This document shows, piece after piece, positions 15,754 to 18,309 of a stretch of 18,309 bases of DNA (position 1 is its first letter; each line of letters opens with the position of its first letter). Source of the stretch: Vitrella brassicaformis CCMP3155 (lineage: Eukaryota; Protista; Chromerida); NCBI GenBank assembly GCA_001179505.1, contig CDMY01000810.1, positions 1 through 18,309 of the forward strand. The letters run 5' to 3'. Position numbers and translations under genes: made by a program. The notes under the pieces were generated by a model. The model was not told the DNA's origin. It searched no databases and saw only the letters and a list, made by a program, of their open reading frames with translations.

Positions 15754-16053
15754 NNNNNNNNNNNNNNNNNNNNNNNNNNNNNNNNNNNNNNNNNNNNNNN
15801 NNNNNNNNNNNNNNNNNNNNNNNNNNNNNNNNNNNNNNNNNNNNNNNNNNNNNNNNNNNNNNNNNNNNNNNNNNNNNNNNNNNNNNNNNNNNNNNNNNNN
15901 NNNNNNNNNNNNNNNNNNNNNNNNNNNNNNNNNNNNNNNNNNNNNNNNNNNNNNNNNNNNNNNNNNNNNNNNNNNNNNNNNNNNNNNNNNNNNNNNNNNN
16001 NNNNNNNNNNNNNNNNNNNNNNNNNNNNNNNNNNNNNNNNNNNNNNNNNNNNN
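15754..16053. other. Assembly gap (300 N)
   Basis: Run of N from 15754 to 16053. Confidence 1.
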
Positions 16054-16157
16054 TGGGTGGGTCAGTTAGTCCAACCAGTGAGACAATTAAGAGGCGGAAG
16101 GGTGTGTGTGTTGGTCCGCCAGCTCGTCGAACGTCAGCGGTGGGAGGGGCGTCTGAC

Positions 16158-16267
16158 CTGAGGCCTTCAGCTTCGCCCCTCTCACTGCTGTCGATCGACG
16201 AGTTGGCGGCCCAGCTCTGCGATGGCAGAGCTCCCTCCGTCCGCGACCGAGTGATGATCTCGACCAA
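16158..16267 (-). other. Possible orphan exon of an unresolved gene next to the gap
   Basis: Flanked by ACAACAG| (16268) and |GTCAGA (16157); reads LVEIITRSRTEGALPSQSWAANSSIDSSERGEAEGL. No start codon or partner exons could be assigned. Confidence 0.25.
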
Positions 16268-16756
16268 CTGTTGTGTGTGTTGTAAGTATGGGTACCATTA
16301 AAGGAACGACCGTAGCTCGTACGTTGTGGTGGGATTGATGTAATGTGTGTGCTGGCAGTTCGTGCGGTGTGGTGTGGTGTGGTGTCTGTTGTCAATATGG
16401 CTGCTCCTGCTTGCTTCCCGCCTCTCAGCCATGGCCAGCCCCAACTTGCTGCTGACACTCACTGTCAGTGTGTCGCTGAGACAAATCCATGCCTTCAGTC
16501 TGTCTGAAATACAGTGTCGGGTTCCTCACACCATCAAGACGTCACGCACACCATCAAGAGCTCTTCTCATGCAGCAGAACAGCACAGAATGAAGCACCCT
16601 ACAGCGAGCAGCAATGCGACCACGCATCCTGGTGCCGTGAAACTACACGCCGTCGACCAACACAGCAGATCGACAGACACCGACAGACACACCGACAGAC
16701 ACACGGACACCCCATGGTGCTCACAGCCTTCCACGGCATACATACACTCGGCTCAG

Positions 16757-17137
16757 TCACTCGAGCCGCAGCTCCACCCACTCTCTGACTTCTCCGTCGC
16801 CCTCCGTCATGATCTCGACCAGCAAGTCGAACAGCACCTTCTCGTGGCTCGGGTGGTAGTAGTAGTTGAAGTGCTCCTTGGATAGCTCGTGGTTCTTCCA
16901 CACAAGGACAAATGGCCCGTCCGGCCAGAAGTATTCGCGGAAGACGTCGTTGAGGGCGTCCAGATTCCGCCCGAACCACGATGGCAGCGGCATGGCGGCC
17001 ATAAGGGCATCGTAGAAGCCGTCCAGGGTGCTGAAGTCAGCCCCGTCTATCTCGTAGATGGGCTTGTCTGTCGTTTGGCTCATCCCGTGAAGAACAAGGA
17101 AAAGAAGCGGAAGTGCCAAAGATGGGAGCGGCCGCAT
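16757..17137 (-). CDS. Barstar (barnase inhibitor) family protein, intronless, with a possible N-terminal signal peptide
   Basis: MRPLPSLALPLLFLVLHG-MSQTTDKPIYEIDGADFSTLDGFYDALMAAMPLPSWFGRNLDALNDVFREYFWPDGPFVLVWKNHELSKEHFNYYYHPSHEKVLFDLLVEIMTEGDGEVREWVELRLE*. Hallmark barstar motifs: IDG..F, FGRNLDALND, FxLxWKN, FDxLVEI, VELxLE. ATG 17137 gives 126 aa; an alternative ATG at 17083 gives 108 aa. The ORF-track start at 17263 lies in antisense RT sequence. Confidence 0.88.
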   Translation of the reverse strand: MRPLPSLALPLLFLVLHGMSQTTDKPIYEIDGADFSTLDGFYDALMAAMPLPSWFGRNLDALNDVFREYFWPDGPFVLVWKNHELSKEHFNYYYHPSHEKVLFDLLVEIMTEGDGEVREWVELRLE

Positions 17138-17158
17138 GATGTGGGGGAAGTGTTGTAA

Positions 17159-18309
17159 TGCAGCAATCGCACCTCGTGCTGTCTGTGGAGCTGTGAAGGC
17201 GTCACACAGGGCGATTCGATGGCGATGTTCGTCTACGCCTGCGGCAGCCTTCCCCTCATCCATGCCCTGCGGGCTGCCTGCGCTGAGGAGGGATATGAGA
17301 TGCCGTCGAGTGGGGCATGGGATGAGTCAGGCAGCGATGGGTCTGGGTCAGACATGGACGAGAACGAAAACGCGCCATCAGAAGCGCAAGAGAGGCCAGA
17401 AGAAGCCAGTGACACGCCACCAGAAGCAGAGGGGGATGGTGCGGGTGTATGTGTGTGTTCTGATGTAGAAGGTGTTGGAGTTGGTGAGGAGGAGAGTTTG
17501 TCGGCCTCGTCAGCCCCGTCGGCCTCTTCATCTAGCGCTTCGCTGCGGCAGTGCTGGTATGCGGATGACTCGTCGGCGCTCGGCAAACTTCACGGCATCC
17601 TCGTGTGGTTTCGAGCCCTGCGTCGCATCGGTCCCTCATACGGCTATCACCCAGAGACCGCCAAGTCCTTCCTCGTCGTCAAACCCGAGCTCGAGCAGAT
17701 CGCAAGGGAACTCTTCGAGCCCGAGGGGGTGCAGATCGTCACGGGCAAGAGGTTCCTGGGCGGCTACGTGGGCGATGAGGGGGGAAGGGCGGCGTTCCTC
17801 TGCGAGAAGGTCGAGGGGTGGGTGCGCGGCGTGCGCGCGCTCACGTCTGCTGCCCGCAACTTCCCACACACGGCCCACGCGGCAATGACGAGGTCTCTGC
17901 AGATGGAGTGGGACTACGTCTTTCGTGTCGTGCTCACCGACGAGTGCGCTCTCAGCCCCCTCCGCGAGGCCATCGCCAAGGAGCTGCTGCCGGCCCTCCT
18001 CGGCGGCCCTGTGACGCCGTCCGAGGTCGACCTGATGCTGCTGCCTGCCCGGCATGGCGGCACCGGCATACGTGACCCTCTCGACCGTGCCGCAGCCGCC
18101 TACCCCGCTTCCCGCGCGAGCACCAAGGTGGTCTCCAAGTCCGTCCAAGGCAAGGCTCCGTTCCACCCTGGCGACCATCGTGCCACCATCCGCCACGCCC
18201 TCACCCGGAGCAAGCAGCAGCAGGACGTCGCCCACAAGACCAAGAGGGAGGCCGCCCTGCCGCACATCGACCGCCGGCGCCATCGCGTCCTCTCCCGCAG
18301 CGCCGAGTA
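17159..18309 (+). mobile_element. 5'-truncated CRE-clade non-LTR retrotransposon, RT C-terminal half and downstream region; runs off the right edge
   Basis: A single frame is open from 17159 (after TAA 17156-17158) to the window end: CSNRTSCCLWSCEGVTQGDSMAMFVYACGSLPLIHALRAAC-[87 aa acidic]-LRQCWYADDSSALGKLHGILVWFRALRRIGPSYGYHPETAKSFLVVK...KRFLGGYVG...SLQMEWDYVFRV...LMLLPARHGGTGIRDP... QGD at 17207 and WYADD at 17555-17569. GPxYGY and LPARxGGxGI are typical of CRE-like RTs. Confidence 0.92.

Follow-up and report, generated by a model that had tools for sequence, protein, structure and literature searches.

In the classic solved complex of barnase with barstar, the barstar residues D35 and D39 are the key ones for the binding of barnase, and helix 2 is the element that plugs the active site of the RNase. 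The same immunity family is found in the pairs formed by polymorphic toxins and their immunity proteins. The features given by Zhang et al. (2012) (PMC3482391, Table 3) for this family, there named Imm-Barstar, are an acidic DxxxD motif in helix 2 and the hydrophobic or aromatic residues preceding it. The same table records Imm-Barstar in dictyostelids, Naegleria and chlorophytes, with no alveolate or chromerid host on the published eukaryotic list.

A gene of this family is found close to the end of a scaffold of the chromerid alga Vitrella brassicaformis CCMP3155 (contig CDMY01000810.1). The whole stretch analysed, which is the entire contig, is 18,309 nucleotides long and is referred to here as the window. 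The protein has the same fold as B. amyloliquefaciens barstar (PDB 1BRS, 1A19), with a TM score of 0.85, and is alignable to it over barstar residues 5-61. Common to both is a helix of the form LP-aromatic-aromatic-G-x-NLDAL-x-D, which includes the D35/D39 positions, and for the Vitrella protein, docking to the active site of barnase in the same canonical way is predicted. On the other hand, the identity in the structural alignment is only about 22%, and the Vitrella protein has a longer loop (YYYHPSHEK) before helix 4. In addition, W38 of barstar is replaced by N45, and two extra residues follow helix 2, ahead of the equivalent of W44, so that the RNase specificity may differ. The Vitrella gene differs also in being nuclear, in a genome with no detectable barnase.

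The other relatives to be compared are a set of bacterial long forms, found in Planctomycetota, Acidobacteriota, Myxococcota, Bradyrhizobium and others, which reach 51-54% identity over the N-terminal 70 residues. These share with the Vitrella protein the motifs YEIDG, WGRNLDA[FL]ND, VLVWKN and F-D-x-L-V-E-I-I...VELRLE, and like it they usually have no adjacent RNase. However, they carry an insertion of about 30 residues (ETxRQLE...CHPSN...), of which Vitrella keeps only 'HPS', they have GGFGTP where Vitrella has EYFWPDGP, and they lie in dense prokaryotic gene contexts. Eukaryotic Imm-Barstar genes, and the eukaryotic homologue P0029 described below, are small stand-alone intronless nuclear ORFs without a toxin neighbour, as in Vitrella; but identity to these is at most 45%, and they form no supported common clade with it. 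Compared with the polymorphic toxin and barnase-barstar pairs, the Vitrella gene has neither a toxin neighbour nor a detectable toxin in the genome.

Family, fold and predicted interface

The barstar ORF is on the minus strand and is stop-free, with in-frame ATG codons at 17083 (108 aa, MSQTTDK...) and 17137 (126 aa, MRPLPSL...). A third in-frame ATG at 17263 (168 aa) is present in the reference only. The features of the locus, in window coordinates, are as follows.

15754..16053, unstranded: 300-N scaffold gap between the barstar fragment and the rest of the scaffold
16054..16756, minus strand: unique 3' flank, possible long 3' UTR; covered by RNA-like contigs, no codon periodicity
16757..16759, minus strand: TGA stop codon of the barstar ORF
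16760..17083, minus strand: 108-aa barstar-family CDS, MSQTTDK...ELRLE (from Pfam, PDB barstar, AF2/Foldseek and GC3)
16946..16975, minus strand: FGRNLDALND, end of loop and helix 2 (from the phmmer alignment to 1brs/1b27 barstar)
17084..17137, minus strand: in-frame 18-codon extension MRPLPSLALPLLFLVLHG, proposed signal peptide; degenerate (CTT)n tract
17138..17178, minus strand: unique upstream DNA, confirmed by read contigs
17179..17204, unstranded: 26-base block of mismatch between reference and contigs, same length, 14 mismatches
17205..18309, plus strand: 5'-truncated copy of a dispersed repeat of very high copy number, cut off by the scaffold end; RT-like ORF (QGD...YADD)

All three versions of the ORF match the Pfam family PF01337 (Barstar) with 56-58 bits (E 1.3e-15 to 3e-15; 57.6 bits for the 108-aa form), over positions 4-65 of the 96 in the profile. 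The curated cut-off is 23.4 bits, so the assignment to barstar made by the first-pass annotation, which had put forward this HMM search as a check, is well founded. No NCBIfam model matches the protein. When phmmer is run against the PDB sequences, B. amyloliquefaciens barstar is found directly (E 3e-5), with residues 12-70 aligned to 5-61. In this alignment LPSWFGRNLDALND pairs with LPEYYGENLDALWD, the sequence NLD42ALND46 is aligned to barstar NLD35ALWD39, such that D42 is equivalent to D35 and D46 to D39, and the W-F of the Vitrella protein is aligned to Y29-Y30. The acidic DxxxD motif and the aromatic residues before helix 2 are both present. Across 27 homologues, residues G38, R39, N40, L41, D42, A43 and D46 are invariant.

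The structure was predicted by AlphaFold2 using the 27 homologues (pLDDT 87.9, pTM 0.81). The predicted elements are strands at 9-13, 58-63 and 103-107 and helices at 20-30, 41-49, 65-72 and 84-93, and the α/β fold of barstar, with three parallel strands and four helices, is found over the whole of the model. A Foldseek search of the PDB with this model returns barstar at every one of ranks 1-30, with a TM score of up to 0.85 on the barstar length (2za4_B) and an rmsd of 2.2 Å. The match covers the full fold, and the C-terminal half, which is beyond the Pfam coverage, is therefore also barstar. On the basis of sequence and model together, the Vitrella protein is identified as a complete member of the barstar family.

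A complex with mature barnase (RNBR_BACAM 48-157) was also predicted. It gives an ipSAE of 0.72, a value reached by 58 of 80 solved complexes and by only 2 of 110 mismatched pairs, against 0.01 for the best control. The contacts agree between runs to at least 96%, and the pLDDT of the partner is at least 84. In the predicted complex, His102 of barnase (149 in the precursor) lies against residues 36-46 of the partner. Since barnase-barstar is such a classic solved complex, the prediction may reflect memory, and it demonstrates a likeness of interface rather than binding.

The locus and its place in the Vitrella genome

The Vitrella culture was non-axenic, and bacterial scaffolds totalling 25.65 Mb were taken out of the assembly (PMC4501334). 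The assembly was scaffolded with SSPACE, its gaps were filled with GapFiller and IMAGE, and it was corrected with ICORN (Woo et al., 2015, PMC4501334). Given this history of contaminant removal, gap filling and correction, both contamination and local assembly errors had to be tested. The genome-unique stretch that carries the barstar ORF amounts to 1,124 bases (16054-17177 in the reference). None of the read-derived contigs bridges the 300-N gap on one side of it, and so the scaffold link there rests on the original mate pairs and on the parity of depth.

This parity was measured in three DNA-like runs from three studies. The depths before and after the gap are 20.1 and 23.5 in run X1, 4.3-7.1 and 5.55 in run X4, and 6.3-9.6 and 10.1 in run X7. 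The depth of the barstar fragment thus tracks the nuclear depth in three libraries, which is not expected of a contaminant. On the other side of the fragment, two Logan contigs derived from the reads of separate runs (L091 from ERR558152, and L092 from SRR505720) contain the 108-aa ORF at 100% identity and join it to 30 nt of Vitrella repeat. A sigma-70-like promoter was looked for ahead of the ORF and was not found. The stretch (16054-17300) is found in runs of seven studies, among them marine-sediment metagenomes. The clear conclusion is that the barstar gene is physically integrated in host DNA.

Two of the marine-sediment metagenome runs, both from 2025, contain 41-52% of the sampled 31-mers of the locus, which suggests that Vitrella or a very close relative is present in natural sediments.

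The remainder of the reference scaffold, starting at 17178, is matched at no fewer than 43 further sites in the genome, many of them 100% identical, and the depth of this repeat in the DNA runs is about 100-300 times that of unique DNA. Neither the repeat ORF of the window nor a fuller 684-aa copy in L005 has a Pfam match. Copies of the repeat, for example in L005, L006 and L009, are very young and very abundant; for the TEs of Vitrella, the published total is only 1.5 Mb.

The two junction contigs depart from the reference in a single block of 26 bases, of equal length in both; beyond it, their final 30 bases again follow the repeat. The same 14 mismatches within 17179-17204 are found in contigs of runs X1 and X4, and here the reference carries the repeat consensus. 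The reference block is probably an artefact of polishing or gap filling, most simply an over-correction by the far more abundant repeat reads, a reading that we base on the assembly pipeline described above. The true repeat junction is at 17205, which is 68 nt upstream of the ATG at 17137 and 122 nt upstream of that at 17083. The read contigs carry an in-frame TGA at 17204-17206. Consequently the 168-aa ORF does not exist, and the ATG at 17137 is the farthest possible start. The 168-aa version from the ATG at 17263 was rejected also on the grounds that it needs the 26 contradicted reference bases and runs antisense within the repeat.

Some smaller features of the locus may be noted here. In the plus-strand contigs, the sequence at the repeat junction (...TCTTTCCTCTGCTCTCACAG followed directly by GGCGAT) resembles a splice acceptor. 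Within the 3' flank, the depth at positions 16362-16385 and 16671-16703 is 3-4 times that of the surroundings, with many loose ends in every one of the DNA runs; these are short dispersed or microsatellite-like repeats of the GACAGACACACC type. A 296-nt 'joint' between the two is seen in a single contig and looks spurious. In the remainder of the window, ten long ORFs have no Pfam match, and the proposed WAPL neighbour was not recovered, there being no match to PF07814 in a six-frame search of the genome.

Reading frame, leader and transcription

The barstar ORF has a clear codon periodicity, which ends at both ends of the ORF. The body of the ORF has a GC3 of 0.85, and its leucine codons are predominantly CTG. 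Using a codon model built from host HSP70 and tubulin exons, its synonymous-codon log-likelihood is -0.84, compared to -0.76 to -0.83 in highly biased host exons, and in codon usage it resembles the host. The whole of the barstar fold is colinear with the ORF, and no intron is therefore needed; in the HSP70 genes of the host, on the other hand, the match is split over many short exons. The original description of an intronless, stop-free ORF of the barstar family with the signature FGRNLDALND is thus borne out, and the ORF is real, beyond chance. The favoured start at M17083 gives the same protein as the database gene model P0001.

We judge run X5 to be most likely RNA, from its contig total (24.9 Mb for a genome of 72.7 Mb) and from a ratio of repeat to unique depth of about 5, compared to more than 100 in the DNA runs. 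Its contigs, which give no information on strand or on transcript ends, cover 16061-16498 and 16476-17102 without any mismatch or joint, and the gene is apparently transcribed and unspliced. The coverage runs for about 700 nt beyond the barstar stop, to the edge of the gap, and this could represent a long 3' UTR or read-through.

The 18 codons between the two ATGs were proposed in the first-pass annotation to encode a hydrophobic leader. The sequence around the upstream ATG at 17137 is confirmed, in that the DNA as far as 17178 matches the read contigs, and the leader has a layout resembling the n, h and c regions of a signal peptide: the n-region is basic, the hydrophobic core spans 13 residues, and position -1 has a small residue. 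Its Kyte-Doolittle (KD) hydrophobicity of 3.0 over 10 residues is reached by 0.7% of mononucleotide shuffles. The underlying tract reads CTT CCG CTT CTT TTC CTT GTT CTT, a degenerate CTT repeat, which gives poly-Leu in one frame and is unremarkable in the other two. At 0.47, the GC3 of the leader resembles that of the non-coding flank (0.53-0.59) and not the 0.85 of the body (Fisher p 0.0012 for leader and body), and five of its seven leucine codons are CTT. The homologues, bacterial and eukaryotic alike, have their N-terminus where M17083 lies, and the RNA-like contig reaches only to 17102, past the ATG at 17083 but 35 nt short of the one at 17137. The leader DNA is most likely 5' UTR or promoter.

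Relatives, partner and alternative readings

When 1.84 billion representatives are searched exhaustively with phmmer, 365 matches are obtained at E<=1e-3 and 18 at E<=1e-10; at E<=1e-30 only the protein itself is found. Within 185,579 prokaryotic species genomes the best matches have 51-54% identity over the N-terminal 68 residues. The highest identity over aligned columns (up to 51%) is to bacterial or metagenomic proteins of 130-140 aa in dense prokaryotic contexts. Among short full-length forms, the most similar are P0029 (45-47% identity) and P0043 (approximately 38%), which have a PSWFGRNLDA motif and the same short architecture. P0029 is on contig L101, which has a GC content of 26%, beside a RIO2 kinase that AT-rich spacers divide into three pieces. 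From these spacers we conclude that L101 is eukaryotic, and its barstar is therefore another eukaryotic orphan barstar, the closest short-form relative that could be placed. It is encoded by an intronless 92-aa gene at L101:1154-1432 (plus strand), divergent from the kinase at L101:1-740 (minus strand).

Three trees were calculated, of 106, 175 and 48 rows, and none of them gives a supported sister or donor lineage. In the 106-row tree the Vitrella protein is on a long branch, of 1.42 against a median of 0.35. The quick 175-row tree places it with P0029 and P0043 in a group of 14 members (SH-aLRT 86), whereas the more careful 48-row tree is star-like and does not join the three. The horizontal acquisition previously suggested for this gene is accordingly upheld in part: the family is bacterial and the gene is resident in the host genome, while the transfer itself is a matter of interpretation, with trees that point to no sister. 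A family dominated by bacteria, with patchy occurrence in eukaryotes, makes a bacterial origin the economical reading, and such an origin is plausible for the Vitrella gene. A barstar in a eukaryote is less of a novelty than it had seemed, in view of the eukaryotic Imm-Barstar proteins already published (PMC3482391).

Other observations on the relatives are as follows. The top match of the exhaustive search, P0028, has a hydrophobic N-terminal extension and was set aside as uninformative, since it comes from a GC-rich 1-kb metagenome contig and has an in-frame TAG. A long-form barstar ORF with a hydrophobic N-terminal extension and a single in-frame TAG is seen at L107:136-708 (plus strand), in a GC-rich metagenome contig; the TAG may be due to an error in the reads, to decay into a pseudogene or to recoding. 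The bacterial loci L010-L089 represent a widespread subfamily of stand-alone barstar-like proteins of 130-140 aa, with the CHPSN insertion of about 30 residues and with unrelated neighbours, among which no RNase gene recurs. L105:3343-4713 (plus strand) encodes a bacterial protein of 456 aa with a full C-terminal barstar domain (356-456) and an unexplained N-terminal 350 residues; its gene adjoins a DUF7919 gene and a CheW/response-regulator gene.

The whole genome (72,700,666 bases in 1064 pieces) was searched in six frames, and it contains one match to PF01337, of 57 bits. Barstar is thus single-copy, which answers the question of paralogues raised in the first annotation. That annotation saw no barnase-like RNase in the window, and this holds: PF00545 (barnase/N1/T1) has no match at E<=0.1 either in the window or in the six-frame genome, a search that an exon-split or divergent RNase could escape. 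All that was seen elsewhere in this respect is a sub-threshold fragment of RNase T2. The Vitrella barstar is an orphan, with no detectable partner RNase. It does not belong to a toxin-immunity pair, and is at most an 'orphan immunity' gene.

The neighbours of the bacterial homologues were scanned in the same connection. No RNase family is among the 25 commonest families listed for each scan (70 upstream and 75 downstream neighbour ORFs), beyond which single cases of an RNase could be hidden; the largest flanking ORFs, which are those that the scans took, have no family in common. The bacterial relatives are thus themselves mostly without an RNase gene, an observation that we count against the explanation as an RNase inhibitor.

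It could be argued that the barstar fragment derives from contaminating bacteria or was joined chimerically to the scaffold, the case that the first-pass annotation had named as fatal to its proposal. The fragment offers only its 1,124 unique bases, held between an unbridged gap and a scaffold-end repeat, the reference is wrong over the adjoining 26 bases, and the non-axenic culture did yield bacterial scaffolds that had to be removed (PMC4501334). Nevertheless, two independent runs span the unique DNA into Vitrella repeat, the depth equals that of the pre-gap scaffold in all three DNA-like runs, the codons are host-like, and the stretch recurs in the runs of seven studies. Furthermore, the 700-bp flank has neither coding periodicity nor a bacterial gene density, there is no bacterial promoter of the sigma-70 type ahead of the ORF, and no near-identical bacterial protein occurs among the 1.84 billion representatives or the 185,579 species genomes. 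We therefore regard contamination as extremely improbable. A gene resident in the host might still be a decaying or functionless relic, with its RNA coverage arising from read-through, antisense or repeat-driven transcription. The RNA-like coverage, unstranded and extending as far as the gap edge some 700 nt beyond the stop, would fit such a relic, as would the insertion of a repeat 68-122 nt upstream of the candidate start codons, the lack of any partner RNase found in the genome and the long terminal branch. Against this, the ORF is intact with a confidently predicted complete fold, every family-invariant residue is kept, and a GC3 of 0.85 together with a periodicity that stops at the ORF ends is what is expected of a translated gene under selection. 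A relic is thus very unlikely.

Two further alternatives accept a functional gene, and differ from our preferred explanation in where the protein acts or where the gene came from. If translation were to start at the ATG at 17137, MRPLPSLALPLLFLVLHG could be a cleaved signal peptide and barstar could be exported against bacterial RNases. This ATG has A at -3 and opens a frame that runs into the domain without a stop, it lies in DNA confirmed by the read contigs, scanning ribosomes would meet it first if transcription starts upstream, and the signal-like layout and hydrophobicity of the leader are of a kind infrequent in shuffled sequence. But the leader has the GC3 and the CTT leucine codons of non-coding DNA rather than the CTG of the body, its poly-Leu is what a degenerate CTT repeat gives in one of its three frames, homologues begin at M17083, and the RNA-like contig falls short of the ATG. 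None of these points is decisive singly; taken together they make a translated signal peptide unlikely, and they speak against the retargeting to the secretory pathway that had been suggested. A variant of this, in which the upstream ATG is used from at least some transcription starts and barstar is exported as an extracellular or endomembrane antidote to RNase toxins of the phycosphere, seems to us decidedly unlikely, though if true it would mean that a eukaryotic host deploys a captured bacterial immunity protein outside the cytosol. As to origin, the gene might be an old eukaryotic barstar, or might have passed between eukaryotes, and been kept patchily in dictyostelids, Naegleria, chlorophytes, the AT-rich eukaryote of L101 and Vitrella. 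The eukaryotic Imm-Barstar genes listed by Zhang et al. (2012) are in keeping with this, as are the status of P0029 and P0043 as the most similar short forms, one of them from a eukaryote, and the 14-member group of the 175-row tree. However, the careful tree collapses to a star and leaves the three unjoined, the bacterial or metagenomic long forms have the top identity (51%), and the occurrence in eukaryotes is extremely patchy compared to the thousands of bacterial members; we consider an origin of this kind improbable.

The explanation that we prefer is that this is a genuine single-copy nuclear gene for a 108-aa cytosolic stand-alone barstar, a likely inhibitor of foreign RNases, which entered from bacteria. 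We hold this explanation as a whole to be reasonably probable. Because the whole fold and the acidic helix are kept, the protein is predicted to be, most likely, a tight-binding RNase inhibitor, in which the NLDALND helix would plug the active site of RNases of the barnase/N1-T1 type. No such RNase was detected in the genome, and we infer from this that the target is foreign. Candidate targets would be the RNases of bacteria living with this non-axenic, coral-associated alga. The gene most likely came into the lineage from bacteria, at a time sufficiently remote for host codon usage and a long branch to have developed.

The Vitrella gene leaves the known mechanism of barstar unchanged. The locus provides a concrete case in which a reference-assembly error beside a high-copy repeat created a false longer ORF. 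A barstar in a chromerid extends the published list of hosts, consisting of dictyostelids, Naegleria and chlorophytes, to the alveolates, and orphan bacterial immunity genes in eukaryotes are candidates for 'borrowed antidotes' to bacterial toxins.
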